A stretch of DNA of 64,000 nt, from assembly GCA_965644315.1 (NCBI GenBank), contig CBFFRQ010000091.1:62001-126000 (forward strand), in the 5' to 3' direction. The translations under genes were made by a program, and so were the position numbers. This stretch comes from Caecitellus pseudoparvulus. Its lineage: Eukaryota; Protista; Bigyra: Bicosoecida. The notes beneath the pieces are model-generated. The model had not been told where the DNA came from and did no database searches. It saw only the letters and a list, made by a program, of their open reading frames with translations. Positions 10,801 to 61,331 of this stretch are shown one piece after another (within the stretch, counting starts at the first letter, position 1; each line of letters begins with the position of its first letter).

Positions 10801-11184
10801 GCTGGCAAGAGGCGTCTGTCCCGACGAACTTCAGAGCAATGCCGTAAAGGAGCGATGCATGATATCCACACCATGTGATCAGGTACCAAAAGTTTTGTGG
10901 ACCTGCTCGCGATGGGCAGTGATGGTGAATTTCGATTCGTGCGTCCTTACCAGCAAAATGTGAAAGCTGGCGCTGAGCTTGGCTGCCACACACGTTGCCA
11001 TTCTGCACCCACGACGGTGGTGATCAAGGCCACACCGTTAACCCTCGCATCACAAACATCAAGACTCCTTTCGTGCACTTTGTTTTCGCGTGAAGCGGCA
11101 CTCTGAGCACATCTCTCCACCAAAGAGGCATTGATACCCGCACTCGATCCAATTTACTAGGCCAAGTTACCCACCAGCCCAAAA
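4815..11184 (-). mobile_element. Duplicated ~6.4 kb unit, copy 1 (candidate selfish/mobile element carrying a CR-type NTPase-nuclease gene)
   Basis: Colinear similarity to 55526-61229 covers coding and non-coding DNA, from aagaggctggc at 4815/55526 to ...cccaaaa/ccctaaaa at 11184/61229. It is visibly lower in GC than host genes. Degenerate similarity may extend left to ~4300/55000. No convincing TIR or TSD was seen, so mobility is inferred. Confidence 0.6.
5043..9275 (-). CDS. Crinkler/RHS (CR)-like P-loop NTPase + PD-(D/E)xK-type nuclease with predicted mitochondrial presequence, copy 1; exons 8931-9275, 8462-8830, 5043-8390 (~1353 aa if spliced as copy 2; the intron-1 acceptor is altered)
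   Basis: Walker A AVHGTGKS (~7456-7479), Walker B FIIDEAN (~7131-7145), VVAFSP, GGVPR (~6687-6701), GQLFED (~6192-6209) and PHVFPTVDFVVF...AFIETTISSLSVH (~5850-5960). This motif order matches the CRN/RHS NTPase+REase module. Intron 2 (8391-8461, gtgagt...gcacag) is conserved with copy 2. Confidence 0.8.
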
Positions 11185-27900: not shown

Positions 27901-30900
27901 ACGCACCACGTCCGACACACCCATCACACGGTCCACGCCCGGCACCTCACCACTGCCATCACGGCACCCCGCATCCACAACGTGCCCTGCCACTGCACCC
28001 ACCATGTGCGGCAGGCCCTCATCCGACAGCCACGACAGGACCTCCGGAGACACGTGTGCCACACGCCGACCCCCACCACCACTGCTGCTGCTGGTGCCGC
28101 TGCCCCCTCCCCACGCGGCAGCATGACGCTCACGGCGTCACCCATGGGCCCTCCCACGCCCCGCCCATCGCCCCCTGACGCACGCCCCCCGCCCACACGA
28201 GACACAGCCCGCTGCAGCGCCGCCACATCCCCAACCGACACGCCGCCCCCCGACGCCAGACCCCCCACACCCACACGCACCACGTCCGACACACCCATCA
28301 CACGGTCCACGCCCGGCACCTCACCACTGCCATCACGGCACCCCGCATCCACAACGTGCCCTGCCACTGCACCCACCATGTGCGGCAGGCCCTCATCCGA
28401 CAGCCACGACAGGACCTCCGGAGACACGTGTGCCACACGCGGACCCCCCCCTCCACCACTGCTGCTGCTGGTGCCGCTGCCCCCCTCCCCACGCGGCAGC
28501 ATGACGCTCACGGCGTCACCCATGGGCCCTCCCACGCCCCGCCCATCGCCCCCTGACGCACGCCCCCCGCCCACACGAGACACAGCCCGCTGCAGCGCCG
28601 CCACATCCCCAACCGACACGCCGCCCCCCGACGCCAGACCCCCCACACCCACACGCACCACGTCCGACACACCCATCACACGGTCCACGCCCGGCACCTC
28701 ACCACTGCCATCACGGCACCCCGCATCCACAACGTGCCCTGCCACTGCACCCACCATGTGCGGCAGGCCCTCATCCGACAGCCACGACAGGACCTCCGGA
28801 GACACGTGTGCCACACGCGGACCCCCTCCACCACTGCTGCTGCTGGTGCCGCTGCCCCCTCCCCACGCGGCAGCATGACGCTCACGGCGTCACCCATGGG
28901 CCCTCCCACGCCCCGCCCATCGCCCCCCGACGCACGCCCCCCGCCCACACGAGACACAGCCCGCTGCAGCGCCGCCACATCCCCAACCGACACGCCACCC
29001 CCCGACGCCAGACCCCCCACACCCACACGCACCACGTCCGACACACCCATCACACGGTCCACGCCCGGCACCTCACCACTGCCATCACGGCACCCCGCAT
29101 CCACAACGTGCCCTGCCACTGCACCCACCATGTGCGGCAGGCCCTCATCCGACAGCCACGACAGGACCTCCGGAGACACGTGTGCCACACGCGGACCCCC
29201 CCCACCGCCACTGCTGCTGCTGGTGCCGCTGCCCCCTCCCCACGCGGCAGCATGACGCTCACGGCGTCACCCATGGGCCCTCCCACGCCCCGCCCATCGC
29301 CCCCTGACGCACGCCCCCCGCCCACACGAGACACAGCCCGCTGCAGCGCCGCCACATCCCCAACCGACACGCCACCCCCCGACGCCAGACCCCCCACACC
29401 CACACGCACCACGTCCGACACACCCATCACACGGTCCACGCCCGGCACCTCACCACTGCCATCACGGCACCCCGCATCCACAACGTGCCCTGCCACTGCA
29501 CCCACCATGTGCGGCAGGCCCTCATCCGACAGCCACGACAGGACCTCCGGAGACACGTGTGCCACACGCGGACCCCCTCCACCACTGCTGCTGCTGGTGC
29601 CGCTGCCCCCCTCCCCACGCGGCAGCATGACGCTCACGGCGTCACCCATGGGCCCTCCCACGCCCCGCCCATCGCCCCCTGACGCACGCCCCCCGCCCAC
29701 ACGAGACACAGCCCGCTGCAGCGCCGCCACATCCCCAACCGACACGCCACCCCCCGACGCCAGACCCCCCACACCCACACGCACCACGTCCGACACACCC
29801 ATCACACGGTCCACGCCCGGCACCTCACCACTGCCATCACGGCACCCCGCATCCACAACGTGCCCTGCCACTGCACCCACCATGTGCGGCAGGCCCTCAT
29901 CCGACAGCCACGACAGGACCTCCGGAGACACGTGTGCCACACGCGGACCCCCCCCACCGCCACTGCTGCTGCTGGTGCCGCTGCCCCCCTCCCCACGCGG
30001 CAGCATGACGCTCACGGCGTCACCCATGGGCCCTCCCACGCCCCGCCCATCGCCCCCCGACGCACGCCCCCCGCCCACACGAGACACAGCCCGCTGCAGC
30101 GCCGCCACATCCCCAACCGACACGCCACCCCCCGACGCCAGACCCCCCACACCCACACGCACCACGTCCGACACACCCATCACACGGTCCACGCCCGGCA
30201 CCTCACCACTGCCATCACGGCACCCCGCATCCACAACATGCCCTGCCACTGCACCCACCATGTGCGGCAGGCCCTCATCCGACAACCATGATACCATACT
30301 CTCGTCGACAGCAATGGCCTGTCCTTGATGACTAACCTCAACCACCTTTGGAAGATTCTGAGAGAGTGTGTGGTTGGGGGTTGATGTCTGTGCCCACGGT
30401 CCAGAATCAGTGAAGTCCCTGAGCATTTGCGCAGCTTGAGCCTGAGGTGTGGCTGGAAGTGGTTCCAGGTTCTGTTGCTTTGTAGCGCCAGGAGGCGTCC
30501 ATGTACTGCGAGGAAGTCTTCCGGATGGAAAGGTAGGAGCTTGGCTTTCAGGGCTTGGCTCCTGCTTGTCTGGTGAAGCGTATGTTGGAGTTGAGGCGGG
30601 CTTCGTGGCAGCCCTAAGATCTGCCCTTTCAGTTGAGAGCGGAGGAGACGCCACTTCACCCGCTGCCCCTTGCACCAATCCCATGACGGTACCACGCCCA
30701 CCCTTGCCTCCTGGACCGCCGGGATGCTGGGGGGATGGGTGGCCGGGAGCGCTGCCGTGGGCCCCGCCATCAGTGGGTGGGTTCTGCTGTGAAGAAGACT
30801 CGGAAGCAAGTACACCATGGAGAGAATGACCTACTCTCTGTTGTGTTCCTGGGTACAAGGGGGGCTTGATTATGCGTCCCCTGGATGGGGTACGTGTGGC

Positions 30901-32147: not shown

Positions 32148-35100
32148 CTACTTTGAGCTGCTCGCCGGCGCCGCAGCAGACGACACAAACTCCAGCATGC
32201 TGCGCTGAGATGCACTCCCTCCCTGAGAGACACCGCCCTTCTTGGCTCGCTTTGCCTCGCTTGCTTGTTCGCCCGTGTCCCTAGGTCGCTTGCCTGCCTT
32301 GCTGGGGGGGGCAGTCTTGCCGACGTCGGCCAAGCCGGTCAAGGCCGCACCCGAATCAGGGGTCGCTGGCGGCGTGCTTGCCTTCTTGGCGTTGGCAGCA
32401 GCTGCTTGCTTGGCGCGACTGGCGGCAGCCTTGTCAACAGCACCCTGTGGGTCCTGCCCCTTCGATATGGCCTTGAACACCGCGCCATACATGAACTGCG
32501 GGGCCAGTCCCATCCACTCCAAGCCTGGGCGCAGGCGCCACTGCCCCTCAGCATTCCGGTGCGCGATGGTGTTCAGCACGCTGGACACTGCAGGGGCAGC
32601 AATGGGCCGATCTCCATTCTTTTTTACCATGGCAGGGCGGTCCAGGATGGCCAGGAGCTCCTTGACTGCGTCTGCCTCTTGTTCAGATTGCAGTCGGTGC
32701 ACGGCGTGTGCGGCTGCCATAACAACTCTGTACCCGAGGAGGTCTTCCTTGAGTGGCCCGCTCAGCAGGCCAGCCAGGTCTTTTCCGTGTTTCAGAGCAT
32801 CGGCAGCAGCTGCTTCGGCCTTTTTGGCAGCCACCTCTTTCCGCCTGGCAGCCTTCAGCCGCTCCATTGCGGCCCATGCAAGTGCGTCCACTGCTGCGGC
32901 TTCGGCGGCATCGGCAGCCCCGCCTTCATCCAGCACTGATTGCACCGCCTCTTCGATCTTGTCATCTTCCGCCTTGAGAGCCGCCAAGTGTCCCGGCATG
33001 GCCTTGTCCAGGCGACGCAGCAGGCTGTCACACCGTGTCCGGAGCTGTGCCAGGGTTCGCGAGCGGAAGAAATGGTCGAACCTCCAGCGAGCTGAGGCGA
33101 GGATTGCGCGCCGCATGGCCCTCCACTGGCCATGCCCCACACAAGCGAGGGTGCACAAGAGGAAAGTATCATGCTCTCGGGTGTATGCATCACCCGGGCG
33201 ACCGACAGAGCGCAGCGGCAGGTGGTCCCACGGACTGCCACATCCCCCCGCGAACACCCCGCCAACGCTCCCAACCCGTGGCTTTTGGAGGGACTGCATG
33301 AGGGAAGGGGGCATAGAGGGGGTATCACCACGAGCATTCTGGTACTGTGCCACGATGGCGGCTGCGGGAGAGGGGGACGTGAGCTGATGCAGCGGCACTT
33401 TGCCAGCCTCTATCAACGCCACATCAGGCAGGGGCGGGCGACAGCGCGCGACAGCGGCCGTCAGCATGCGTTTCCAGGTCACCAAGTCGCGCAGCTTGCT
33501 CTCCGCCCTCGTGATGGTGCGCAAGATGCGAGGACCTTCTGGCAGTTCGTGCACTTTCCCGTCTTCGTAGCTGCCGTGCAGTTTGGGAGCTTCGGACGTT
33601 GAGGGCGGGGCCAGGCCGCCCAGGCCAGCTGCCTCCGTGCGCGCAGCGCCAGGAGGGCCCGCCGCAGCCTCTGCAGGATGCACCTGCATGCGTGCCACCG
33701 TGTTCTTGCCGAACCACAGCACATTGTAGTAGCGCTGCACTTCTTCGGGCGTGCGGCCAGGTACTGCGCTGCAGATGTCATCAATGGCCTCACGGCCAAA
33801 CCGCTTGCATGCTTCGAGAATGGCACCCAGATCGCTGCGCTTCCAGTCAGGGAAACCCTGTTGAAGTATGGAGTCGCGCTGCTCTGCCAGGTCAGGGTGG
33901 GCAGCAGCAAACGGGGTGTAGGTGGGCGGCTGCAGGGAAGTGGGCTCAGCCCCTGCAGCTTTCACTGCCTCCTTGTGCTGGGCCAAGGCCTCCACGTACG
34001 CTTCCACGTGATCTGCTTCTGCCTGCGCGATGCTCATAGCTGCGGCCTTGTCAATGAACTGCCAAGGGTGCAGGTGGGGAAGCCAGGGCTCCTCACCAGT
34101 GTTTCCTGCGGCATGTAGCTTCTTAAGAGTGCCCCGCATGCGAGTGACCGGGTCACTGGAGCTGTTCATGCTCGCCTGTGTCGTCTTCTTGAAGTACGCA
34201 GCTTCGTTGTAGGTGCCCACGCGCGTGCGGCGCTCGTTGCGGGCCACCTCCTCCTCCGCCGCCGCAAGAGCCGCAATGTCGGCCAAGGCATCCCGGTCAG
34301 CTCTGCTGCGGGCCACCTCTGCCTTGTAGTCCACGCCCTCAAACACAGAGGAGGTGACGGCCGAGTCCAGCTTGAAGTCGAGGAGAGAAGCACTCCCCTC
34401 CTGACCCGCCTTGGCCCCACCGACGGCCTCTGCCTTGGCACTCAGGGCCCGCGTCCGCTCCTGCCCCTGTGCCAGGAGCCTGTCCATGTCCTCATCCGAC
34501 ACCTGCCCGTCCTTGGACGCCTCCGCCCTGAAGATGTTATCGGCTCCGTACTGGATCATGGCCACCATTTCGCCCTTGGACAGGCGGTTGCCCTTGTCTG
34601 CCAGGCGGCCCTGCTGCACCACAACGGCATCCAGCTTCAACTTGATCATGGCGCGCTCCACGATCTTCTCCTCCACGCTGTCTGAGGAAATGAGGCGGTA
34701 CACCTTCACAGGCTTAGTCTGCCCGATGCGGTGGGCGCGATCCTGCGCCTGCAAGTCCACCTGCGGGTTCCAGTCGCTATCGTACAGCACGACGATGTCA
34801 GCGGTAGCCAGGTTGATGCCCAGCCCCCCGGCCCGCGTGGACAGCAGGAAGATGAACTTGTCGCTGCCAGGGGCGTTGAACGCGTCAATTCCCTCCTCCC
34901 GATCTTCGTAGGAGGTGTTGCCATCAATGCGGCAGTACCGATATGCTCGCAGGGCACAGTAGTCCTCTAGGATGTCCAGCATGCTGGTCATCTGCGAGAA
35001 GATCAGCACACGGCTGCCTGCTGCTCGCAAGCGCTGCAGGAGCTTGTCCAGCACTGCCAGCTTTGTGCAGTGGCGCACCAGGTGCTCGCCGATGGGTGGC

Positions 35101-37001
35101 AGGGAGCGGTCCTCCACGCCTTCGAATAGGTAGGGGTGGTTGCAGCACTTGCGCAGTTGCATGACAATGTTGAGGAGGCGTTTTCCGGAGGCTGGCGGTG
35201 CGTCGGCCCCCCCACCCGCCGTCAGCACCGCGTCGAAGTCACGCTTGAGAACGCTGCGGTAGATGTCCCGCTGCATGGCAGACATGCCGACGTACAGGAA
35301 CGTCTCCGTTTTGGGGGGCAGGGACTTGGCCACGTCGGCTTTCAGGCGGCGCAGCATGAAGGGCTTCAGCACCGCGTGCAGCTGCCGGATCATCTTGCCC
35401 TTGGCGGTGTCGTCGCTGGTGGAGACCGTCACGTCGAACCAAGCATCAAAGGCTTCGCTGTCTCCAAACACATCTGGCAGCAGCAAGTTCAGCAGCGCCC
35501 ACAGCTCGTGCAGGTTGTTCTGCAGGGGGGTGCCAGTCAGCAGCAGGCGGTGAGCCACCACCAGCATGCGCACGGTGGTTGCCAAGGCCGACTTCTCATT
35601 CTTGCACCGGTGGGCTTCGTCGATAATGAGCATCTGCCAGGGCCACTTGGTGAGCGTGGCCCGCTCAATGTTCGCCACTTCGAAAGTCGTCACGACGACA
35701 TCCCAGGTGCGCTCGCTCTCCCGCTGCCCAGGCCGCAAGATCGTCTCACATACCTCCTTGCGGGTGGCCTTGTCCCCGTGGAACTGCATAGCACGCAGGG
35801 AAGGGCACCACCGCCCCAGCTCTGCCATCCAGTTGGACAGCGTGCTCTTGGGCACGAGGATGAGGTGTGGGCCGCGGATGTGGCGGTACTGCAGCATGTA
35901 GCCCAGCACGCTAATACTCTGCAGCGTCTTGCCCAGCCCCATCTCATCAGCCAGGATGCCGTTCAGGCCGTTCTCCTGCAGGTTGATCATCCAGTTCAGG
36001 CCCTCCAGCTGGTATGGTCGCATGGTGCCGAATTCGATGACGCTGGGCTGACGCGTGAGGCGCATTCGACTAGCACCAGGGGACAGCATGCCGGATGCAG
36101 TCGCTGCCTTTGCGGGAGGCGGTGTGGACGGCGTGGCGGCCGCCTCTGTGCCGCTGCCACTCTCCTCCCCAGCCTCCACCTCCCCCTCCAAGTCCTCTTC
36201 TTGCCGCACACGGCGCCGCCGAGGCGTGCCCGCACTCTCTGGCTTGGTGTCCACCCCATCCACACTTGCTGCTGGCATTTCCGTGCCCTGCGATCGCAGG
36301 AAATCCTTAAACAAGGCAGATTGCTCCACCAGGAAGTGGAGTCGCCGTTGCTGGGCCGCACGCTGCGCCACCCGCATGCTCTCCAGCTGCTCCTCCAAGA
36401 CACTTTCACGTGCCTCTCGCTCAGCCCGCTGCTGTGCCCTTGCAGCGATGCGGGCTGCAGCTCGAGCTTTGGCGTCGTCATCCAGCTCCCGCTCTGCCCT
36501 GGCATCTGCACGGGCTTCTCTCTCCTGTCCAGCGCGGGCGGCAGCGGGAGTTAAAGAAGCCTGCAAGCACACCCCGCCAGTAAACATGATGCATCACTCA
36601 CTTCAGCTCTTCGCGACTGCTGCTGTGCGGCTTCTGCGCGGGCCCCTCGTGCTCCGCGTGAAGTGGGCATGGCATATTCCGCAGCTTGACGGTCAGCCAG
36701 TTCCTCTGCTGCTTTCATGTCTAGCTCCAGCTGGTACGCGTCCCAAGCAGCTTTATCTTCAGCAGCCTGGGCCTTAAAGGGCTCCTTGGCTTTGCTGTCG
36801 AGGTCGCGCCACTGGTCAGGAGGAGAAAAAGCACTTGGTTGTGAGTGTTGGAGGGAGGACGCCAGGCCGAGGCTGCCTCACCTCTGCCGCAGCTGCCCGT
36901 GTCACTTCGCCCACAGCCAAGCCGCTTTCGTCTTTCCTGCTGAAGTCTGATAAGAACAGTGTCCATGCACTGCGCGGCTTGGGAGGAGGGCTAGACGCCA
37001 T
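32148..37001 (-). CDS. ISWI: ISWI/SNF2H chromatin-remodelling ATPase with N-terminal HMG box; exons 36882-37001, 36602-36811, 32148-36560
   Basis: MRPYQLEGLNW, GILADEMGLGKT, IIDEAH, LLTGTPLQNNLHELW, SRVLIFSQM, FLLSTRAGGLGINL and QAQDRAHRIGQ, followed by HAND-SANT-SLIDE (QGFPDW..., WRFDHFFRSRT). Upstream exons give PKPRSAWTLF...EWRDLDSKAKEPFKAQAAEDKAAW (HMG box). Confidence 0.93.
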
Positions 37002-42366: not shown

Positions 42367-45300
42367 ATGAGTGGTGCTGCTGATGGCGCCCCTGTGGCGA
42401 AGGGCCGCTCCAAGCGATGGGGGATGGAGGTGAGCGTGGCGTGTTGGGTGGTGCAGTGCCTCTGCAGCCTGCACAGCGCCTGCCTGCCACTCGTGCAGGA
42501 CTACGTGGCCAACCCCCAGGCCAAGCTGCAGGACCTCCCTGCACACTTCCATGATGCCGACTTTGACCCTGTTCGATGGGTGCTTGTGAGTTCGCCTGAG
42601 GGCCAGCAGCGTCAACCGGCTGGGCACACTGCCGCTTGTGGTGCTGGCGCCTGCGCAGGAGACCATGCCGCTGGACCTGGGCGAGTTCGCGCAGTTTGCC
42701 ATGGAGCAGCAGACGTCCAAGGATGAAGCCCGTGACGCAGTGCTGTCCCAGCTCTCCCGTGCCGTGCTGGGCAACTACACCGCCTTCATCGATGGCATGC
42801 GGCAAATCCACGAGGTGGACATGGACGTCAGCCGGGCCATGGTTCACGTGTCCAACGCCCTGCGGCAGCTGCGCGGCGGCAAGGCTGCCCTGGCCACGCA
42901 CTCCCTGCGCATCACAGCCCAGCAGCGCCACTTGGTGCGGGCCAAGGGCGTCCTCACCCGCCTGCGCTGGATGCGGTCGGTGCTGCAGGCAGGCTCCCAC
43001 ATGAAGGCGGCAGTGGCACAGGGGCACTTCCAGGAGGCAGTGCGCGTGGCTGCCACGGCTGCCGCCCACCTGGAAGAGGCAACTGCCAGCAAGTTCGTCG
43101 CGCTGGAGCACGCACGCTCACAGGCCGCGGCGGCTCTGCCGGGGGTTAGGGATGCCATGGATGCCGCCCTGGGCACCCTGGTGCAGCAGTGGGTGATGCT
43201 GGATCCCACCCCTGCCACAACACAGGTGCTGCCACGGGTGGCGCACTGGTTGGACAGCCTGGCAGCTGGCGCCACAGGCAGCTCTCTGTTGCTGGGCCAG
43301 CGGGAGGCATCGCCCGCCTCCGCTGCCGCTTCCAACTCGGGTGGCAGCGAGGGGGCAGAGGCGCCGGCGGCTCCAGGGGGCTTTTGGGAGTCCTTGCCCC
43401 CACTACTGCGCCTGCCAGAGTCATTCCCCTCCCTGCTGAATGCGTACATGCAGCTGGACGAAGCGGGGGTGGATGTGCGGGTGCCAGCAGTGCACTCTGC
43501 TGCGCCCGCTGGCGGCCTCGCCTTCGGGGGAGGGGAGGGGGATGCTGGTGGCGACGAGGCAGATGCCCTGCTGGGGGAAGTGACGCCTGGCAGCCACTTG
43601 GAGGTGCTGCCGCTGCGCCTGCACGCCTGCCTGCGCCTGGCCCTGCGGAAGGCAGCCAAGGGTGTGTTGGTGGACTTGCTCTTGCGGAGCTGTGGAGCCC
43701 GGCGCCTGGCAGTGGCGGCCATGCGTGCCCGGGCCAGCCTGGCAGGGGACACGTCTGAAGCCAGCGCTGCCTTGCGCCGCGCCATCGAGGACGCCCTGTC
43801 TGCCTACTCTGCGGAGCACGGGCGGCTGTGGGGCTGCCGCATGCGGGATGTAGCGCGGGAGGTGGGGGAGGCACTCGCCGAGAAGAGCCGTGAGTCTGCC
43901 GCCAGTGCGCAGGCAACCAGTGCGCAGTCCTGGGCCCCGCCTGCCTCACACACCGGGCAGGGGCTGTGGGCTGCCCAGCTGCAGGTCCTGGCCAGTGCAG
44001 CGGCAGCAGCGGGGCAGGAGCTGCCGGCGCAGGATGGCGACGTGCCGTGCCCACCGGGAGCCTGGGAGTTTGAAGGCAAGGGGGCAGTGGCGGGGGGGTA
44101 CATGCTCACGTACGCCATGGGGCGCCTGGCAGCGGCTGTGTCGTCCACCCTGCACTGCCACCTGCTGCTGCTGGCCCTGCTGGGGGGGCACGGCGACCCG
44201 CGCCTGGACTCCTGGGAGTTTCTGCACCGAGACCTCCGAGCGCCAGACCAGGTTAAAAGCCCAGCGAGCGAAGCGCAGGGGCGCATCCGGGCCCTGGTGC
44301 CTGCCGTGGCTGCCAGTGCACCCACCTTGTGGGCGTCTGCACAACACGCACTGGGGGGCGCGCTGGTGGCCATGGTGGCGGGCAGTGGGGACGCCCTGCC
44401 GCCGTCCGCCCTCACACAGTGCCTGGCAGTGGGTCTGGACGTGCAACGCATGGGCGTGGAGTACCTGCAGGCTGCGGAACGGGCAGGTGGCGGGGAGGGG
44501 GGCAGCGACACCCCCCCTCTGCACAGCACAGTGTCCCCCCAGCAACTCGTGCAGCACTGCGCGCCGCTGCGTGCTGCCCTGCGCCTGGCTTGCAGCACGT
44601 TGCTGGACGCGACGCACGCCGCCACGCTTCAGAAGCTGCGCGGGCTGCTGGGCAAGGAACTGTGGACGCCGCAGCCCTTGCCGGTGACGTCAGTGGCGGC
44701 TCTCCTGCAGCGCGTGACGCACAGCCGCCCCCTGTGGTGGGCCTGGCGCCCCGCGTGGACTGCCCGGCTGCCCTTCCTGCCCAGCGCAGCGGACGGCGTG
44801 CCACCGTGGCTGGCGACTGCCTCCAGCCCTGGACGCCGGGGGACGGCGGCGCCGGGCTCTGGGCGTGCCTGGCGGGGTCTCACCCGCACGCCGCCATGGC
44901 TGGGGTCGCCCCTGGAGGCCATCGACACGGCTGCCCTCGTCACTGCCCCTGCTGCCGCGTCGTCTGCACAGGAGCGCACGCTTGGGTGGGGGTACACTGC
45001 CCGTCTGTGGCTGGGCAACGCCACTGGGAGCCGCAGCACCCCGCCCGCGGCACCCTGGGTGAAGGCTCTGGTGCACGCCAATGGCTTGCTGGCGGCGAAG
45101 GACGTGCCAGCGCGCCTGCACCACCCCATCATCGCGGCGTCGGTGGCGGCTGTCGCCGACGTGGGGGACGGCGTGCTGCTGGGGAAGGAGGCGGAGGACC
45201 GCGTGACGGCGGCGCTGTGCCTCGTGACGAAGCCCGGCGCCACCCCGCCCGAGGAAGCGTCAGACCTCCTCTGCCTGGCCAGGGCAGAAGTGCTGGGGTA

Positions 45301-47965
45301 CCGTGCCGGGTGGCAGGGCAGCCACACGTGGGCATCCACGTACCGTGCCGCAGGTGAGCCCACCGCTCCGCAGCGGGGTGTGCCTACGCCAGCGCTGGTG
45401 GGCGGCAACCCCTTTGGTCGGGTGTGTGATGGCGCCCTGCCCACGCCAGAGCAAGTGCAGCGCCATGTGTCTGCGCTGCAACGCATCGCGACCAGCTCCG
45501 CCAAGTTGTCACGTGTGGCTGACTCGGTGACTCTGGCGCCGGAGGGTGAGGCGACCCCGGCGAGTGCTTTGGACGCTCTGGTGCTGCATGTCGTGCCGGC
45601 CCTGTGCTGGGCCCGTGACGACGTGTACGTGCACGGCACGCCGCTGTTGCCCGTGCCCACCACGTCGGCGCCTGAGGAGGGTGAGGAGGAGCAGGAGGGT
45701 GACGCCGAGGCGACTGCGCTGCTGGACGGCGACGAGGAGGCCAGCGACGGAGAGGGCAGCGTGGCGGACGGCGGAGGGGAGGCCGGCGCAGCGGCTGGCA
45801 TGGACCTGTCCAGCACAGGCACAGTGGTGCAGCAGGCCATCGGGGAGCTGGTGGCGGGCGTGCTGCCCGAGGGAGGCCTGACGCTGGGCGTGGAGTACCT
45901 GCTGCCTGGTGTGGTGCTGACGTCCGCCGGCCTGAAGGGGCTCCTGCACGGCGTGAGCCGGTACGTGAGGCTGCTGCAGTGCTGCCCGGCGCAGGCGGTG
46001 GAAGTGTGGGAGGGCCTGGCAGGCCTGGTGGACCTGTACATGCACGCCGCCGCCAGCGTGGCGCTGCCCCTGCCCGCCCAGCAGGCCGTGGTGGGGGGGC
46101 AGGGGCGCCGCATGGCTGCTGTCGCAGCGGGCGTCACCTCCCCCACGCCCAAGGCCCTGACTGCCGCGGACATCCCCCCCGCAGCGCTGGAGGACGACGG
46201 GCAGAAGGGCTTCCCCTACCTGGACAGCAACTCTGTGCCCATGGTGGTGGTGACGGGCACGGCTGCGCTGGGCGCTCTGCACCTGGCTGCTGCCGGGACG
46301 GGCCATGCCTCCATGGCCACCCTGGCGACGCACGCCGCCAGCATCCTGCACGCCGCCAAGCGCGACCCATGGAACCTGCCATTCCTCACCCTGCGCTCCT
46401 TCCTGCTGCATGCCGGCGCGCGGTTGAGCGCACTGCCCTTCTTCGAGTCGGCGCGAGGCAGCGGCAGCGGCAGCGGTGGGGGAGACACCGGCACCGTCGG
46501 CTCCGGCACCAGTCGCACCAGTGGCCGCACGTCGGCGTCAGGGCGAGGCGGTCCCCGTACGCCCCAGGCGGCGCGCGGGAAGGCCCGCGCCGGCGAGCTC
46601 GCCACGCCCTTCCACAGCCCCAGCGTCGTGCGGCAGGGGCGGGGGGGTGGGCAGGCCGGCGCGTGGCTGCACTTTCACCAGACGGACGCCGCGGCGCCTG
46701 CCGCCCTCATGCACTTCAACGAGGCCGCCGACCTGGGCCCCGAGATGGACAGCGAGACGTGGGGGGTGAGCCCCCTGCCCCCTGCCCCAGGGCCGGAGGG
46801 CCTGCCTCCCCTGGAGTGCACGGGCGTTGCCCCGCGCACCGTGGCTGCCCAGTCAACTCTGCTGCTGCCCCTGCTGCTGGCTGCCGTGCGCCCCTGGTTG
46901 CAGGGGGTGCTGCCCCCCGCCGGCCTGGGCACCCTGCGCTCCTGGTACGCCACCCTGGCCACCACCGTCGTGCAGCTGCGCGCAGTGGCCAGCAACGCCC
47001 TCGTGCCTCGCCTGGTGCCGGAGGTGGGCACCCTGCCCCAGGCGCTGGCGGCACAGGACTGGGCAGGCATGCGGGACATCTCCAGCTCTGGCGCCAGTGA
47101 CTATGTCCAGCGCGTGCAGGGCGTGCTGGGGCGCGCTGGGCGCGTGCTGGGCACCCTGCGCAACCGTGGCGCCCTGCCCCCCCTGGGGCACCTGGACCTG
47201 TGGACGGCGGTGGGGGGGCGCCTGTTCACAGCGGCAGCCCAGGGTGTCGCCGGCGTGCCACGGGCGTCCCTGGAGGGGCGTGGCGTCATGGCCATGGACA
47301 TGAATGCGCTGGCTGTGGCCACGGCGAAGCATGGCCCCACCCTGCCCGCCCTGGTGGCTGTGGCGCCGGCGCCGTCGACTCACTCGGGCGTGGCAGCCGT
47401 GGCGGGGCACGGCCGCCCCCTGCCGGACAAGGCCTGGGTGGACGCCTTCATCAAGGCGTTCTACTTCGAGGACCTGTCCACAGATGCGCTGGCTTGGCTG
47501 GAGGCGTCGGCCTGCGTGTCAGGCGCTGAGCAGCGGGAGGCCAGCATCGTGCCGCTGGCGGCATGGGGTCAGCTGCTGCCCCACGTCCTGGCGCCGGGAG
47601 GCACCCTGCCCAGCGGCGGCGACCCGCTGCTGGTGTCTGCGCAGGCCGTGGGCAAGCCGCCTGCCCTCAGCCTCACCAGCAGCCACAGCAGTGGTGCCCG
47701 GGGGACGGGGGCGGGCGTGTTCCGAGCACACTACCCCCGCAGCGTCGGCGGTGGGCTGCTGCTGCACGGGCCCGGCGCTGCCGAGCGTGGCAGTATGCTG
47801 GGGCGGGGCAACTCCGCCCGGGCCAAGGCCGTCAAGGCACACATGGCCACGCTGCTGCACTGGCACGCTGCTGCCGCTGCGCTGGATCTGAACGTGCTGC
47901 TGTCCCTGGAACAGGAGGCGTCAGGCGCCTTCCTGGGCGTGGAGGGCGGCGGCGGCGCGCTGTGA
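42367..47965 (+). CDS. VPS50: Syndetin / VPS50 (EARP complex), expanded by low-complexity insertions; alternative start at 42271
   Basis: N-terminal F...DFDPV...VLSQLSRAVLGNYTAFIDGMRQIHE (Vps54_N-like). C-terminal GVAGVPRASLEGRGVMAMD and PLPDKAWVDAFIKAFY match syndetin KCSNEGRALMQLD / PIPDKEFVETYIKAYY. Confidence 0.82.
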
Positions 47966-52689: not shown

Positions 52690-54670
52690 TTACATGTCTG
52701 GCGCCTGGGGTGCGCGGGGCTTGGGCCCGCCTGCCTGCTTGGCCATGATGATCTGGTCCACGCGCAGCACTGTGATGGCGGCGTCGAAGGCCAGGCGCAG
52801 GGCACTGATCTTGACGGCGGCGCTGTCCAGAATGCCGTCCGCCGCACCGTCCACGACGGAGCCACGGTCGTCCCCCATGACGTTCACGCAGGCCGACACC
52901 TGCCCGCCCGCATGCGCTGCGTACAGCGCCGCCATGGTCTCGCTGGCCTTCAGCCCCGCGTTCTCCGCCAGTGTGCGTGGGACGACCTCGAATGCCTCAG
53001 CGAAGGCACGGATGGCGTACTGCTCCAGGCCGGGCGTGCTGCTGGCCAGGGTGGTCAGCTGGTGCGCCAGCTCAGTCTCTGTCGCGCCGCCGCCGGGCAG
53101 CAGGCGTGGGTCGCGGCACAGCTGCTTGGCCACCGCCGTCGCGTCGTCCACGCTGCGGGCGACGTCCTCCAGGAAGCTCTGCGTGGCACCCCGCAGGACA
53201 ATGGTGGCGATGCCGCTGTCCTCCGCCTCGTCCTGGCGGAACACCGTCACGCGGCGCGAGGCGATCTCCTGCACCTCCACAGCCGTGGCGTGGCCCAGTT
53301 CCTCCGGCACGGGGGGCCCCACACGCACGAGGGCGGTGGCGCCGATGGCCCGGCACAGGCGGCGCAGCTCGAACTTGGACACTACCTTCACCACCATGAG
53401 CCCGTACTTCTCCAGGAAGTGCAGGGCGATCTCCGAGACGGAGCCGCCAGAGACCACCACCTTGGCGCCCGTGGCGGCGATGGCGGCAATGGTGCTCTCC
53501 ATGGCTGCCTCTTCGCCCTTGGTGAAGTCACGCAGCTGGTCGGCGTCCTTCAGCACGACGGTGCCCTTGGTGTCGGCCTCCATGGCCTCGATGCCCACGG
53601 AGAAGACGGCGATGGGCGCGTCGGAGACGGCCTTCACGGTACCCTCAGTGTCGCGGCGCACCACTGCGCCAGTGACGACGGCGGAGTTGCCGATGGTGCC
53701 GCCAACCATGGGGCTGACACGGACGCTGTCCACGTTCACGGCAGGCGCCTTGGGGGCCGCCGGCATGACGGTCGTGGCGGCCTGCGCCACCAACGGCGCG
53801 ATGATGTCCTCGTACCCGAACTGCTTGGATGCGATGACAGGCTTGAGCATGGCGGTCATGCTCGCGACGTCGCGGGGCGCCTCCAGCTTCTGCACGGCCA
53901 GGGAATCCAAGACCTCCAGGGCTTTCTTGGATGCGTTGGTGTAGCCTGAGACGATCTCAGAGGGGTGCACGCCCTGATGAGGGGGGAGGGGGGCAGGCGT
54001 AGTGCACAGCGTGAGCCAGAAACGCTGCGTGAAACGCCGGCACACGCACCGTGCGCAGCAGCTCCTCGGCCTTGCTCAGCAGCTCGCCAGCAATGGTCAC
54101 AACAAGGTTAGTTCCGTCACCCATCTGTGGGGCGAGTGGGGGGGCAGTGGCGAAACCTGGCCCGCGCGCAAGGTCGACTTCGCGCTCTCACCTCCTGCTC
54201 CTGCATCTTTGCCGCCAGCACCAGCATGCGCGCAGCGGGGTGCTGCACCTCCAGCTCACTGCACACTGTCGCAGCATCACCAGTCACGAAGATGCGCTCC
54301 AAGTGGTTGATGACCTGTGGAGCGGCCGTGCTAGGGCAGGGGTGAGCAGCAGCAAGGGCACAGCCGGGCACTCAGCACAACGGCACAGCGCAACGGCATG
54401 GCTTGTCAGTACCTGCCGTGCTGAGCCTGTGCCCCGCGCCGCGGGGCACGAAACACACAGCACAGGCATGAAGTGCAAACAACATGTAGCACACACCAGC
54501 TTGTTCATGCCGTTGGGGCCCAAGGAAGTCTTGGTGATGTCGGACAACTTCTTGGCCGCCTCGATGTTGCGGAGCACTGCCTCCTCCACGCCAGAGAAGT
54601 GCTTGAAGCCCTTCTTCAGCAGGCCGCTGACACCTGGGCGCCCTGTTTGAAAGCGCATCTTGCCGCTCAT
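52690..54670 (-). CDS. CCT8: T-complex protein 1 subunit theta (4 exons)
   Basis: KHFSGVEEAVLRNIEA, TSLGPNGMNKL, VINHLERIFVT, GDGTN, SKFELRRLC and the C-terminal VLRVDQIIMAKQAGGPKP. Confidence 0.96.
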
Positions 54671-55758
54671 GGTTGGCGCAGGTGACGGGTCTGGGTGGCT
54701 TGCAACAGGTGGGGTCCGTTCGCAGGCGATATCTAGTGCAACGCAGGTGAAACGCTGGCTGCACTCTAAAGTGAACTACGCCACATGCAAACAGCTGAGC
54801 GTGGGGTGGGTGCTTGGTAAATTAAATATATGCTCCTACTGAACCTGTGCGCAGCCAGCGTTTGTCAGGGTGTCCCACTGCCTGGGCACCTTCACTTAGG
54901 GCCTCCTGGTCTTTGATCCAGTCCGTACAGGTGCGAGCGCCAAGTGTCCATTGGCTTGCACTGCAGAAGAAAGCGCGAACGAAATTCCCGTTCCAGTGCC
55001 CAGAAAGGGATTTGCAGTGCAAGAAATGCTGCCAGTTCCAGACTGTGGCCTTTTCTGGCGTGCGTGTGCCCGAGCTTGCTAGGCATTAGCGGCCGCTCGC
55101 CCAACTGCCGCAGCTCGTACATTCTAAAATCCTACCATCAAACTTGCTCGGAATGTAAGCGTTGCATGGCATGCAGTAGCCCTGACTGCTGCTGGCGGCA
55201 GAGGCAGGCTGCGGGGAAGTTGCTCAAGAACAAAGGTCCGGCTGTCACAGATCCGGCAGACGCTCCATGTCGGGCCAGACATGTGCCACGGGCATGCTTT
55301 CGACGGCACCATCATCAGCACAAGCAACAGATATCCCGTGTCCCTGTCTCGGCGGGGCGGCTCAAGGTGGTGCGAGCGATGGCGGAGCCAAGGACAGCAG
55401 ACGCAAGCCACGGCCTCACATTGATGCCTAATCGCACACCGCCATCCCCACGCTCTACCCTCACTCTGCCCTGTCCATGGACCACACCCACAGGCGAGGC
55501 AAGTGCGTGGGGAGCGGTGAGAACAAAGAGGCTGGCGATGCAACGTAGTTCGAACACCGGCACGCATACTCCAAACACACCACACTCTCCCGCCTCTAAC
55601 GCTGCAATGTCTGCATTCTTCACTCACTGCACTCTCAAAATCAGAACACAAGATCCCCGTGCAAACCGCTCTGAGGAGACAAAGTCCGACTCCAGCCTGC
55701 AAAGGCCATCAACAAAGCGCAGTCAGCACTGGCAAGGAGGAATGTGGCAACAGCGGAG

Positions 55759-58700
55759 CTACTCTGACTTCGGCAACTGCCTCCGAGGCAAGGGCGATGA
55801 CTCTTCAATACTGACTGAAAGGTGGGATTCCAGTGACTTCATCTCGGGGGGCAGGAACCCGTCCTTAAACACTCCGAAGAAGCCAGGGATCTCAACGGCC
55901 TGTAAGTCATGGTGCTCTTTTCCCTCGTCCTGGCCCTTGGATGTGCAATAGATGAAGTAGACCTTCACATCATCTTCAGATCGGATTAGTGTCATGAGAG
56001 GAGGCTCCGTGCTGCTCCCAACCTGTGCATCAGAGTGGGGCTGCACTTCCATGGCCTCAGCCTCAACGCCAGGCATGTCGGACGCTGCTTCGGATGCCTC
56101 ACTGACGTCGTCGGCGGCCTCTTGCCCAAGGTCTGTGGGTGACGCACTTTCCTCGAAAATAGCTGCTGAGAGCACTGGATCTCTGGCAGCTTGAGTTGTC
56201 GCCAGTCGAAGCAACTCTGCCGTGGCCGCCCCAACTTGCTGACGTTGCTCCTCACCCAGCATCGTCGGATCTGTGGTTATCCCGGTGAAGTGGCCGGTGG
56301 TCGCACGTGCCTCAATTGTGCAGTTCAGGTCAATGGGGACCCCAAACATCCACAAGATGGAGTTCGCCATCGTTGTCTTCTGCTGACCTCGCTTCCCAGC
56401 TGCCTGCGTGAACTTCACCCTGTTCCCGTCCAATTCTGTGTGGTAGTTCAGATTGCACGCAAGGTTGGCAATGTCTTTTAGCGTGTTCGGAAGCTTCAAC
56501 TTCTTCAAGTCTTTCGGGGGGACGCCGGCGAACTTCAGCTTCTCCAGGGTTCTCCCGTAACCGTGCACGGACAGGGAAGAAATGGTGGTCTCGATGAAGG
56601 CCACCTCCAGCTGCCCCTGCTCCGACTCCTTCGGCCGTCTGAATACAACGAAGTCAACTGCTGGAAAGACGTGGGGAGTGCGCACCACATGCGTGTTCCC
56701 AGGCTCCAGGTTCTGCACAATCTGCACGTCCATTGGAGACAAGCCAGCCCCTGTCACCTCAAGCTTGACCCTTTCCGCCGGGAACGAGTCCTTGTCCAGC
56801 CCAAAGGAGTACGTCCGCAGCATCTCAATCGGGGGCTCGCCAGCATCCTTCGACAGTGGCGTGTACTCTGATCCGAACAGCCCCAGCTCCAACAGGGTCG
56901 TCACCGAGTCCTCGAACAGTTGCCCTGTGCCAAAGTCGGTCGCCCCTGACAGCAATGCCTCCCACGCCTTCTTCTTCGCCGGGTCGTGGCGGTTACTCGC
57001 AGCTTCTGTGTGCTTCTGGAACAGAGCTCGCATGTAGGCGTGCCTCGCTGTGTGCGACGAAAATTCCACATTGTCCTCCAACGCAAGCTTGTTCGGTCTT
57101 ATCCTCGAGAGGATCGAGGACGCTGCCAAGGAGTGATTCCAAAACACCGACAGTCCACCCGCGTTGCCCGCAAGCTCCTTGAGCGACTTGTCGGAGAAAT
57201 GATCGAAACAGCGACTCTGCATGCTCTCCATGCTTTCCTTCCAAGCGTCATGGAGCACGTTGAAGAACCACTCTTCTGGGTTCGCCGCCAATCCACGCTC
57301 TTTCAACAAACTGGCGATTTCAGCTTTACTCTTACTGCGATCCTCGATCTTTCTACGATCCTTCTCCTGGTCGCCTGCAATCTTGACAACCCGACGCAAA
57401 CTCCGAGGAACCCCGCCCAACGAATGGATCAGTTTCCGAAGGAGCTCCCGTTGTTTGTCGTCTTTCACGACAGTCAAGGCAAGGGGCGGAAGCTGAAGCG
57501 AAGTGTCTTCACCCGCCCAACTGTCAATAACCCGTGCTTTCTTGCCTGTATACGTAAGCCCCTCAGGCACCTCATACTCGGCCGGCCCCAGCATGAGCTT
57601 GAGCGCCAAGCTCGGGTCCAGCCGCTGCATCTCGAAGAAGGGGTGCTCTTTGTCAGCTGAAGAGGACGTGTCAAAAGCCTTGTTCAATGTCTGGTTCGTC
57701 TGACGGAGTGCTGCAGCGTGGAAGTCAGGGGAAAAGGCGACCACCTTGCTCGCACTTGAGTTCCAGCTCATCAAGCGCTTCAGCGATTCCCACCACCTTA
57801 CATGCTCCGTATGCTTCTTCACCAGCTGCCTGTGCAGGCGGTTGGCTTCATCAATGATGAAAGCACTTGGCAACCCCCCCTTCTCGATTGGTGTGTAGTC
57901 ACCTGCGTTGTATATTGAGTCTTCCACGAAAGCTCGGAGGAACGCATGGTGTGCATCGGTACCATGCATGCCAATCTCAGCAATCTGCTGACACAGCTCG
58001 GGAGTCCGCACACTCCTGCCACATGAGAACGAGAATCCCCCCTGAAGAAGTCGCTCAAGGAGCTTGTCAAACTTGTCAGAGTTTGGAGCGAGCACTTCTG
58101 ACTCTGACAAGTACATGACATCGCCCCCAGCCCCGATCCCGATCATCGCTGCAAGAGCCCGCAGAGAAGCAGACTTCCCCGTCCCGTGCACGGCAGTTGT
58201 CATGGTACCAAGCTGTGCTCCAAGGCAGTTGTATGCTGCCTTCACGAGCAGCTTTGCACGTGAGCGAGTCAGAACATACGTCGTAAACGTCAACTCCTCT
58301 AGTGGCACTTCAGACTCAGGCAGGTGAAGGAAGCCGTGTGCACCGGGCCTCAAGCCTGGCAATGTCACCCCGTCCAGCGGGAGGCTGGTCAAGTCAGTTT
58401 TCTCGTCTTTGAGCAGGAAAGGCAGCGATACCCAGATGGGAATTCGCAGCACTGCAGCTTTGAACTCGCCGTCGACAAAGATAGGGTAGCATCCAGTGCT
58501 CCACTTGATGTCCTTCACTGGGTCAACGCTATCCTTGAACTTTTTGTCTTTCTTAAGTCGCGCTGCGGTCAAGGGTGACTCGGGGCGAAAGGCATGCACG
58601 ACGTCCCAGTACCACGCATCTTGGGTGGTGAAGGCACGTTCAACATTGAGCAGCCAGCCAAAGTTGTCAGTCAATATTTTATGCTTCTTTCGGTTCATCT

Positions 58701-60063
58701 TAAGGAGCCTGTCGATGTAGCTTGCATCCGTGACCCCCGCGGTCTTGAGCAGCGCTCGAGCCTTGGCCTTGCCGTTTCGTTTCGCAATCAAGAGTGCGCG
58801 AAGCGGGAGCCCCAAATTCACGACCTTGTGCTTCCGCACTGCTTCGTTGAACCACGCAGAGCGGATAGCCTTCTCAAGTTGCTTTGGAAGCCTCGAATCT
58901 GGCAAGTGCTCAGGGGCCTCAGACACCAACTTCCTGCTGTACTCGGCGGGGTCGTGTGCCGCCAGGCTTGACACTGATTGGTTACAGAGGTTGAACACAA
59001 TGTGAGTCCGCTCGTCAGGGGACTTATGGTGCTGCAACATTTCCATGGATGTGCTGATGATTCCACTTTCCTTCAAAATCTTCCACAGCTCGGGCCCCGC
59101 CTTGGCCTGTGCAAAGCAAAGGAAGAAGCCGAAGTGCAAAAATATCAGCAAACAGGCAAGTCAAATGCTCAACTCACTTCACATGCTTGCATAGCACTCT
59201 TCGTGTCTGCAATTAACTTTCGTCTCTTCGCTTGCTCAGCTTTCAGTGCCTTCTGCCTCTCCACTTGCTCAGCTTCCAGTGCCTTTTGCCTCTCCACTCG
59301 CTCAGCTTGACTTACCTCTCGGCGTCGATTGAGTTCTTCGTTCAGAGCGTTGTCTGCTTCGAGACGCTGCGTGTAATACTCCCCTGCTTTGGCCAGCATA
59401 TCTGGCAGATCTATGACCCAAGCCTTCGAGCTGGCGTTCTGCAGCTCGATACCCAGGTCTGTGAGGTAGTTTTCGCCCCTGGCCAGCCTCAATGAAGCAT
59501 TGATCGGAACGGACAGCAGAGACGAAAGGAGTTGCGTCTGCACGTCCATGGCATTCTTCTCCGTCCGAAGCGCGAACTCAAGTTGACGTATGAAGCCGCA
59601 TGAAGCGAAGGTCTGGAACAGGAGAGTGTCAGGAGGCGTCTGGGAAGAAAGCGAAGTCGAGTGAAGGGTGTGGTGACTCGCCCAAGCACGGCCCGCGCGC
59701 AAGGTCACGCACCTCCAGCTTCTCGAGGGCTGCCAGAGCCAGTCTTAGTGGAAGCTCTCCTTGTGTTTCTTCAAGCTCAGACAAAGCCACAAGCAACTTC
59801 TCCCTCTTCTTCTCCGGAAGCTGTCCCCACCATGACGTGCTCGGAAGCACATCGCTGGCCAACCGAGGCCCCTCCACTGCAGCACTAGCCACAGATGAAG
59901 CATGACGCACCAGGCTGGGTGCCTTGTGCGCCTGGGGTGCGTGTGGTGGAGGCCAAAGCACTGGAGCAGGAGCAAATTCCGCCCCAACACTGCGCAACGC
60001 CAACAAGGGCCGCAATGACGCCCCCAGGCCACGGGACAAAGCCAAGACAGCCTTCAAACTCAT
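55759..60063 (-). CDS. Crinkler/RHS (CR)-like P-loop NTPase + nuclease with predicted mitochondrial presequence, copy 2; exons 59713-60063, 59178-59612, 55759-59106 (1377 aa, apparently intact)
   Basis: Both introns are canonical and phase 0 (gtgcgt...ttccag, 100 bp; gtgagt...gcacag, 71 bp). It has the same Walker A/B, GGVPR, GQLFED and FPAVDF...FIETTIS..VH motifs as copy 1. Exon 3 is 3348 nt in both copies. Confidence 0.85.
59231..59307 (-). repeat. 33-bp (11-aa) coding tandem expansion specific to copy 2
   Basis: AERVERQKALE-AEQVERQKALK-AEQAKRRKLIA versus a single AERVKRQELIA in copy 1. Confidence 0.85.
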
Positions 60064-61331
60064 GCTACGCCGTCGATGTGTGCAGATTCCGACGATGCTC
60101 GCTCACTCGTCAAGGCCGTGCTGGTGCGGAAGCGTGCCGACTCCGAGCAGCGCAGAGCTGCACAGAGCGGAGGTGAGGCAGGGTTCAACACAATGCCCCA
60201 AGCGTACAGTACACAGGCTGTGCTATTTGAGTTGCGGGAATCCCGATTGTTGTTTGTTTGCTTCCATATCACCGTTGCACAGCCCTAGCAAGCCAGTTGG
60301 GACATGAGATGGTGCTTTTCGATGTGCGAATGATGTAAAAATGCGTCTGAAGGTGCAGACGCAAAGGAAGCACCGCCAAATCTTGAACGAAGACACGTGG
60401 CGCCTGCACTAGCAGACAAGACGAACAATGTGGCCTCTGAGATCCCAGCAACTCGTCCCTCGCTTCACTCGCCCCCCGCACACAACGCGGATGACGGCGA
60501 AGTATGTCAGCATTCAAACGGCCAAGCGCCAAACGACACTGAAGCCCCCACGAGGCATTCAACACAAGGAGCACGCTCTTGCACTTGTGGCCCTGTCGAG
60601 CACCGACACCGCAAGCAGCAAGCCTGCCTGCCAAGCTCTGCAAGCTTCCAGCGAGCAAGCTGCCGTGGCTACGATGTGGACGGACTCGCCCGCCACGATT
60701 GACGGATCTCACGCTACACCACGCAACGCACCGAGTCCAACAGCGGTCCATCTCACAAGCTGCACGGAGAGATGCTGTCCAAAGTGCGACTGAGTTGTGA
60801 ACCTCGTGCAGTGCGGGCCAGGCTGCAAGGTAGCATGCTCGCACAGAGGCCAGCCACTGCCGGGCCCAAGCCCCGAACACTGCAGACCACCAAGTGGCCC
60901 CTCCTCAAACGACACCACACAGCGTATCTGTCCACACAAAGCCCATTCCACGTCAAGCCCTACCCTGTGATACCCCCGCAGGGTCCTTGCCCGCAGAGAG
61001 ATTGAAGGCTGGCGCTGAGCTCGGCAGCCACGTACTTTGCCATTCTGCACCCACGACGGTGGTTACCGAGACCAAACCGTTAGCCCTTGCATCACAAACA
61101 CCAGGACACCTTTCTTGTGCTTTTAGTTTTCGTGTGAAGCGGCACTTGCAGCACTTCGTCAAGACGAAGAGACATGGATACCCGCACTCGATTCTATTTG
61201 CCAGGCCAATGCACCCCCCCTCCCTAAAACGAATGAGGCCATTGAACTTGGGGGTTCTGTGACGACTGCGGGTGCGTCGAGGGTGCTCATCTGAGCTGTG
61301 TGTGCAGACGTACCCCCCTGTGCAGCATGCG

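Follow-up and report, generated by a model that had tools for sequence, protein, structure and literature searches.

A large family of spliced STAND-type NTPases with a predicted C-terminal PD-(D/E)xK fold and a presequence-like leader in the bicosoecid Caecitellus pseudoparvulus

The stretch of DNA analysed here, referred to as the window, comprises 64,000 nucleotides (nt) of the bicosoecid Caecitellus pseudoparvulus (assembly GCA_965644315.1, contig CBFFRQ010000091.1, positions 62,001 to 126,000), and it carries on the minus strand, at 55759-60063, a gene for a large protein with a predicted nucleoside triphosphatase (NTPase) module. We found that this gene, called copy 2 because a close relative lies earlier in the window, is expressed and spliced and belongs to a lineage-specific family that numbers about 35 or more large proteins. 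Its product appears to consist, in order, of a leader of about 55 amino acids (aa), a helical/coiled-coil linker, an N-domain, a STAND/AAA+-type P-loop NTPase and a C-terminal PD-(D/E)xK fold. The explanation that we favour, tentatively and at slightly less than an even chance, is that the leader drives import into mitochondria and is processed near aa 54/55, and that the protein acts there as an effector with a nuclease fold regulated by nucleoside triphosphate (NTP). In such a mechanism the leader would serve as a matrix-targeting presequence recognised by TOM/TIM23, a processing peptidase would cut near RH/AS (the slash marks the cut, aa 54/55), and the mature protein of about 1330 aa would be located in mitochondria, where the STAND module, by binding or hydrolysing NTP, may govern both oligomerisation and the action of the nuclease-fold domain on nucleic acid.

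A previous sequence-only reading of this stretch had spliced three open reading frame (ORF) fragments into one protein of 1377 aa. All three fragments were found on the minus strand (59629-60063, 59169-59708 and 55759-59151), and they belong to an intact three-exon gene with GT-AG introns and all junctions in phase 0. Exon 1 (59713-60063, 117 aa) starts at the first ATG after an in-frame stop, is followed by a GT donor at 59712, and encodes the leader, a conserved VLPSTSWW motif and a dimorphic helical cassette. Intron 1 (59640-59712, 73 nt, GT..AG) separates it from exon 2 (59178-59639, 154 aa), which encodes the helical/coiled-coil linker, matched no family in a Pfam scan and has GTGAGT after its end. 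Intron 2 (59107-59177, 71 nt, GTGAGT..CAG) is followed by exon 3 (55759-59106, 1115 aa plus stop), which begins after CACAG and encodes, in order, the N-domain, the NTPase with its helical and winged-helix parts, the restriction-endonuclease-fold domain, an acidic linker and a C-terminal strand. Sequence searches and fold predictions were run exon by exon.

Contigs of public sequencing runs that lack the introns were then compared with the window. In contigs of two runs (X1 and X2) a joint skips 59640-59712, whose ends are GT..AG on the minus strand, and therefore the start of exon 2 was placed at 59639. With this start exon 2 gains the residues TPPDTLLFQ, and the same stretch is conserved at the protein level in distant paralogues. 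A product of 1377 aa would need an acceptor at 59613; because intron 1 ends 27 nt earlier than had been assumed, copy 2 encodes 1386 aa. At the second junction, a loose end of an X1 contig at 59179 runs directly into the exon-3 start of a paralogue (AKAGAELWSI), which is the predicted joint of exons 2 and 3. Another joint in the contigs, from 59741 to 59819, was rejected as an intron and read as a divergent paralogue, because its ends are non-canonical and it coincides with the variable cassette of exon 1. The contigs thus supported both junctions and the splicing of the fragments as one unit, for the family rather than for exactly copy 2, since they are 90-99% alike and run X1 is guessed to be RNA.

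Copy 1 (5043-9275, minus strand, 1362 aa) has the same structure and canonical splice sites, with exon 1 at 8931-9275, intron 1 at 8858-8930, exon 2 at 8462-8857, intron 2 at 8391-8461 and exon 3 at 5043-8390. Its exon 3 is 90% identical to that of copy 2, with a ratio of nonsynonymous to synonymous divergence (dN/dS) of 0.37. Exon 2 of copy 2 contains an internal 33-nt tandem duplication at 59224-59308 (AERVERQKALE/AEQVERQKALK) that copy 1 does not have, so that the length of the coiled-coil linker varies between the copies (154 versus 132 aa).

Two paralogues had been proposed, which proved to be an underestimate. A six-frame search of the genome assembly (30.6 Mb, 215 contigs) with exon 3 gave 65 exon-level matches, most of them in open frames of 1000-1230 aa and at 26-90% identity, corresponding to about 35 or more copies. 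About 20 of these, including both window copies, carry the same first exon; exon 1 is conserved in 23 genomic matches, each adjoining a family member, and exon 2 had 22. One further copy is found on the same contig, some 13 kb ahead of the window and in the same orientation (C91:44975-49277; loci L004, L005, L014); it has several in-frame stops and a frame break and is a decaying paralogue. In a subfamily on contigs C46, C111, C206 and C87 (loci L026, L027, L008), exons 2 and 3 are continuous in a single open frame (1189-1227 aa); this subfamily thus lacks intron 2, and the presence of introns varies within the family.

The leader of copy 2 occupies 59893-60063 on the minus strand (aa 1-57, MSLKAVLALSRGLGASLRPLLALR...SLVRHASS). 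About 17 paralogues start in this way, with the consensus MSLKAA.TLSRAVGASLRP.LALRSVGAEFAAAPVLWPPP...APSL.RH[AT]SS; their first acidic residue stands at position 29 (28-29 across leaders) and the net charge over 57 aa is +5 to +7, with +5 in copy 2. In copy 1, the first 57 aa contain seven basic residues and one acidic residue and end in VRHASS, just as had been reported. K4, R11 and R18 are seven residues apart and would fall on the same face of an amphipathic N-terminal helix. The maximum hydrophobic moment of the leaders is 0.50-0.60 (0.50-0.58 in the main clade, 0.50 in copy 2), a value reached by 1-19% of shuffled sequences, and that of the HSP60 presequence from the same genome is 0.51. 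An R-2 type site, RH/AS, lies at 53-56 in the main clade (RH/ASS, 53-57), and the pattern R-x-A-S-[ST] lies at 50-56 across leaders. Charge, scarcity of acidic residues, amphipathic helix and an R-2/R-3 type site are together the properties of a mitochondrial presequence, as the sequence-only reading had held. The mitochondrial HSP60 gene itself (L033, C32:455923-460362) provided a local positive control: its first exon encodes a short presequence, MYSRAVSKSANVARAVASRGF/ATGKDVKF, and is followed by introns, and its site, RGF/AT, is of the same kind as that of the family leaders.

A second leader clade, on contigs C67 and C125, starts MHTAASVLRRLPARVWRATCG...QPARFAST (MHTAASVLRRLPARVWR...ARFAST), with RF/AST at 50-54. 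Over its first 30 or so residues no match to the main leader was found, and it nevertheless keeps the properties of the main leader, the seven-residue spacing of basic residues and the position of the motif. The strongest reason to think that selection acts on these properties as such is that two leaders with differing first residues share them. Paralogues at a greater distance, such as those on contig C11, appear to begin with an acidic N-terminus and to have no leader.

Other addresses for the leader were considered. A plastid transit peptide is unlikely, because the genome search turned up a single GroEL-type gene, that of mitochondrial HSP60, and none for light harvesting. A signal peptide is also unlikely, as an Arg breaks the hydrophobic run every seven residues on inspection of the sequence. 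By eye, exon 1 (VLPSTSWW) is similar to the N-terminus of the distant homologue P0022 (ALQWWGF), but BLASTP aligned nothing, and so we do not argue that the leader was added relative to homologues; in the DNA upstream of two foreign homologues, whose starts are uncertain, no presequence exon was seen. We put mitochondrial import of the family proteins through the leader at about an even chance.

The strongest competing explanation accepts the same protein family and takes the leader for something other than an import signal. The proteins would then act in the cytosol or the nucleus, either as sensors or executioners like NLRs or as selfish toxins, and the leader would be a gene-converted constant 5' cassette whose presequence look comes from base composition. 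We regard this as a serious possibility, although a minority one. Between subfamilies, synonymous divergence (dS) is saturated in exon 3 (1.4 to above 3) and only 0.25-0.6 in exon 1. Trees of exon 1 and exon 3 disagree, and first exons can be the more divergent part in pairs whose bodies are nearly identical. At 45% identity between paralogues, alignment at the DNA level is confined to exon 1 and about 130 nt of the 5' untranslated region. The low dS of exon 1, its discordance with the body and the restriction of DNA-level likeness to the 5' end indicated that a 5' module has been exchanged or homogenised among copies. Arg/Ala-rich N-termini are common among local ORFs, NB-ARC immune receptors are among the best NTPase matches, and effectors of Avs, Hachiman, Shedu, Cap4 and NucC are among those of the nuclease fold. 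Crinkler (CRN) proteins, moreover, have been reported as nuclear (PMC5289972). On the other side, the leader sits in a unit of 55-58% GC and not in the 70% GC background, and the seven-residue spacing and R-x-A-S-[ST] are kept in both leader clades despite their different beginnings. Its codons also have a dN/dS of 0.37, like the enzyme body (the remainder of exon 1 has 0.60), which argues for purifying selection on the leader.

Within exon 1, residues 82-107 occur as two alternative cassettes, ...PEKKREKLLVALSELEE... and ...DETKQKKVLSVFDDLNPQG..., which are combined freely with different bodies and are found in both leader clades. The window copies carry different forms (copy 2, 59742-59818; copy 1, 8931-9030), and the cassettes were also recognised at L019, L023, L026 and other loci. 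Such a pattern suggests either a dimorphism of long standing or a cassette that has been exchanged repeatedly. For close copies, the dN/dS of the body is 0.37-0.49; the family genes are under selection, though not tightly. Loose purifying selection is usual for conflict genes.

The nucleotide-binding part of exon 3 corresponds to exon-3 aa 235-700 (57007-58404, minus strand), with the Walker A motif AVHGTGKS at 58171-58194 and the Walker B motif FIIDEAN at 57841-57861, both on the minus strand. All motifs quoted earlier for this protein were present (AVHGTGKS, FIIDEAN, VVAFSPDF, GGVPR, GQLFED and PAVDF...AFIETTIS...H), and the Walker A GTGKS, the Walker B hhIDEAN, the SPD motif and the GG.PR motif are conserved among homologues. 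An AlphaFold2 model of this region had a predicted local distance difference test score (pLDDT) of 85 and a predicted template modelling score (pTM) of 0.87. Foldseek matched the model to CED-4 and plant NLR resistosomes (E 2e-4), archaeal AAA+ ATPases, ORC and TnsC. With VIA-align, the matches were 2qen (Z 14.1 over 301 residues), 2fna (13.9), a wheat NLR (13.1), TnsC (11.8) and MuB (10.9), together with mitoribosome chains (Z 10.7-12.2) that we take, unchecked, to be mS29 from their length and a DAP3 label. Homologues had weak Pfam matches to AAA_16, AAA_22 and NACHT, and a sequence-profile search of the PDB gave a single match, at the Walker A motif, to ChlI. By its modelled fold, the region is a STAND/AAA+-type nucleotide-binding domain with helical and winged-helix parts, in agreement with the P-loop NTPase proposed earlier.

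The C-terminal part (55762-57009, minus strand, exon-3 aa 700-1115) comprises the PD-(D/E)xK-fold domain, the acidic linker and the tail, with the core motif PAVD...IETT...H at 56563-56664 on the minus strand. Its AlphaFold2 model had a pLDDT of 79 and a pTM of 0.81. A Foldseek search against the PDB returned nothing at E<=0.001, and nucleases were frequent among the weak rows. In the VIA search, the top 50 were mostly restriction-endonuclease-fold chains with Z up to 4.9, among them BspD6I (4.9), FokI (4.8), HamA, MspJI, SgrAI, LlaBIII, Can2, Card1, NucC, Avs3/4 and Cap4. A search of the ESM Atlas gave Shedu SduA_C (template modelling score 0.56 by target), PDDEXK_1, PDDEXK_7, DUF2800 and Hjc. 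Although each score is weak, the Foldseek, VIA and Atlas lists agree, and the restriction-endonuclease fold predicted for this domain, with an alpha-beta-beta-beta-alpha-beta core, is therefore supported.

The earlier proposal of a nuclease was supported for the fold and for the two acidic positions of the motif, and not for its Lys. In the model, D818 lies at the start of strand 2 (PAVD) and E839-x-T841 in strand 3, which are the classical positions of PD...(D/E)xK. D818 is invariant, and E839, T841, H848 and N915 are at least 90% conserved among 35 homologues that are only 15-20% identical. The Lys of (D/E)xK is thus replaced by Thr in at least 90% of the homologues, and the homologue alignment contained no other basic residue conserved across the wide family. 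Since this Lys is a conserved Thr, nuclease catalysis is only putative. The domain might therefore keep the restriction-endonuclease fold without being a nuclease and act as a nucleic-acid binder or scaffold, wherever the protein is located. We consider this rather unlikely, as conservation of D818, E839, H848 and N915 over such distances would suit a retained active site of variant chemistry, and motif variants without the Lys are known in the PD-(D/E)xK superfamily.

That the family is instead a mobile or self-duplicating element, whose protein is its own transposition machinery with a TnsC/MuB-like ATPase fused to a TnsA-like endonuclease, is unlikely: its high copy number, the many copies on short contigs that break inside copies, GC and GC3 (GC at third codon positions) below those of neighbouring genes, TnsC and MuB among the NTPase fold matches (Z 10.7-11.8) and the link of NTPase-restriction endonuclease modules to prokaryotic transposons (PMC5289972) would all suit such an element, but the termini carry neither inverted nor direct repeats, the ends of the duplicated segments are not shared, integrase and reverse transcriptase are both missing from the unit, housekeeping genes surround the window copies, and saturated dS between subfamilies, intact frames and dN/dS below 0.5 mark these as old genes under selection.

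The segment holding copy 2 (55526-61209) is a duplicate of 4815-11165, at 81-93% nucleotide identity by blastn; no terminal repeats and no shared ends were found in the duplicated segments, and the ends differ between copies. The two window copies are separated by ordinary genes, in order a condensin II CAP-H2 (12144-14291), a protein kinase (16255-17877), an ISWI-type SNF2 remodeller with a SLIDE domain (32148-36587) and a syndetin/Vps54-like protein (42638-47965). Elsewhere in the genome, many copies lie on short contigs or near contig ends. A subtelomeric location was considered and not supported, as the contig ends at which copies are cut lack telomere repeats and are simply breaks within the copies. 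Family genes have 53-61% GC and 59-69% GC3, compared with 64-72% GC and 74-84% GC3 in neighbouring housekeeping genes, and the family units in the window (4001-11000 and 54001-61000) form islands of 55-60% GC in a background of 65-73%. Origin, expression level or recombination regime may each account for this contrast. Two long tandem arrays were also seen between the copies, at 24021-26000 (30/60-nt period, 57 registers) and 27351-30379 (8 copies of a unit of about 376 nt, 92-100% identical), where GC is 72% and the GC skew is extreme (-0.43); they overlap long ORFs without a Pfam family. The public runs that contain parts of the gene are mostly marine metatranscriptomes, and the organism is probably a heterotroph of marine waters.

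We return to the favoured explanation, in which the leader directs an NTP-regulated effector into mitochondria. Several findings weigh against it. The conservation of exon 1 comes mainly from homogenisation, as its low dS beside a saturated exon 3 indicates, and acid-poor, Arg/Ala-rich N-termini also occur on probably non-genic ORFs of this 65-72% GC genome. The evidence for splicing is from contigs of paralogues or other strains, and that run X1 is RNA is a guess. The Z scores for the restriction-endonuclease fold are low, the catalytic Lys is replaced, and HMMER gave no link to Crinkler or RHSP. Roles in elimination of mitochondrial DNA (mtDNA), in defence against mitochondrial plasmids or as a killer, which had been offered earlier, are speculation. 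A bolder version, which we consider improbable, is that the family forms an arsenal of expanded, recombining, NTP-gated restriction-fold nucleases in mitochondria, policing organellar nucleic acids (mtDNA inheritance, plasmids, viruses) or stored away from the nucleus as a suicide effector that is released when mitochondria are breached; in both cases a conflict system of the Crinkler/RHS or STAND-nuclease kind would be directed to an organelle.

If import is true, this would be, to our knowledge, the first NTPase-nuclease conflict module, of the Crinkler/RHS or STAND-nuclease type, that is sent to mitochondria. It would take the form of a large family that recombines and has kept two alternative cassettes for a long time, and in a unicellular eukaryote it would open tests of organelle-directed immunity, of selfish mtDNA control and of cell suicide by a nuclease. 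Should there be no import, the family still represents an unannotated expansion, to about 35 copies, of eukaryotic STAND-nuclease proteins whose relatives are mostly in metagenome-derived assemblies. It also offers a variant active site, D...E-x-T...H, and a homogenised 5' module useful for studying how conflict genes diversify.

The sequence-only reading had assigned the protein to the Crinkler/RHS (CR) type of module. The commonest C-terminal module of CR proteins is NTPase-helix-turn-helix (HTH)-restriction endonuclease, which also forms most Phytophthora CRN C-termini (PMC5289972). By fold, the family described here has the same order of P-loop NTPase, HTH/winged helix and restriction-endonuclease fold, and this part of the assignment stood. 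The same layout is known in prokaryotic defence proteins of the STAND-nuclease kind. Sequence searches did not confirm it: the Crinkler ubiquitin-like header PF20147 had no match in the proteins or in the six-frame genome, RHSP PF07999 had none at E<=0.1 in the 35 homologues or in the genome (both genome searches without a positive control), and Pfam gave no family for any fragment. From 1.84 billion proteins, a profile built on 12 paralogues returned 49 matches only, and none of the nine that were scanned against Pfam had a named family. Among the matches are distant proteins, 1000-1200 aa long and drawn from metagenomes and a single NCBI assembly, in which both the NTPase and the C-terminal core recur and whose only Pfam matches are weak ones to P-loop families. 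Protein-language-model neighbours of the whole exon-3 product were Mucoromycota clusters labelled Crinkler family (0.91) and DAP3 (0.95), and those of the C-terminal part alone were Mucoromycota hypothetical proteins (0.93) and a Euglenozoa RHSP cluster (0.87), all of which are leads and not proof; prokaryotic STAND (nSTAND1)+Mrr_cat and ATPase_2+Hjc proteins were also among the neighbours. Membership of the CR group is thus plausible, with about equal weight on either side, and by analogy, in how it may work, the family can be placed with conflict modules of the CR or STAND-nuclease type.

The family and CR proteins have in common large lineage-specific expansions, occurrence in free-living eukaryotes, and a constant N-terminal part on more divergent bodies with recombination near the junction. 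They differ at the N-terminus and in the possible destination, as the family here starts with a presequence-like leader and a helical linker, whereas CR proteins are described as secreted, translocated or nuclear in a review that does not mention mitochondria (PMC5289972). Prokaryotic STAND or ATPase_2 proteins with a PD-(D/E)xK domain (Avs3/Avs4, nSTAND1-Mrr_cat, archaeal ATPase_2-Hjc) resemble the family in the NTPase fold, as seen in the 2qen and 2fna matches, and the nuclease-fold matches extend to Avs3/4, Hachiman HamA and Shedu SduA domains. In contrast to these, the family is eukaryotic and intron-bearing, has a long N-terminal extension, lacks the Lys of the catalytic motif and has no tetratricopeptide repeats or other recognisable sensor domain; compared with Avs3/4, in which the nuclease is N-terminal, the nuclease fold is C-terminal here. 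The NTPase core also superposes on the mitoribosome chains taken, unchecked, as mS29 (DAP3), a likeness at the level of the P-loop fold class only; mS29 is a protein of about 400 aa without a nuclease-fold domain or coiled coil, and no sequence match to it was found. Endonuclease G, a small, single-copy beta-beta-alpha-metal nuclease without an NTPase, represents a nucleus-encoded nuclease that is kept in mitochondria behind a cleavable presequence.

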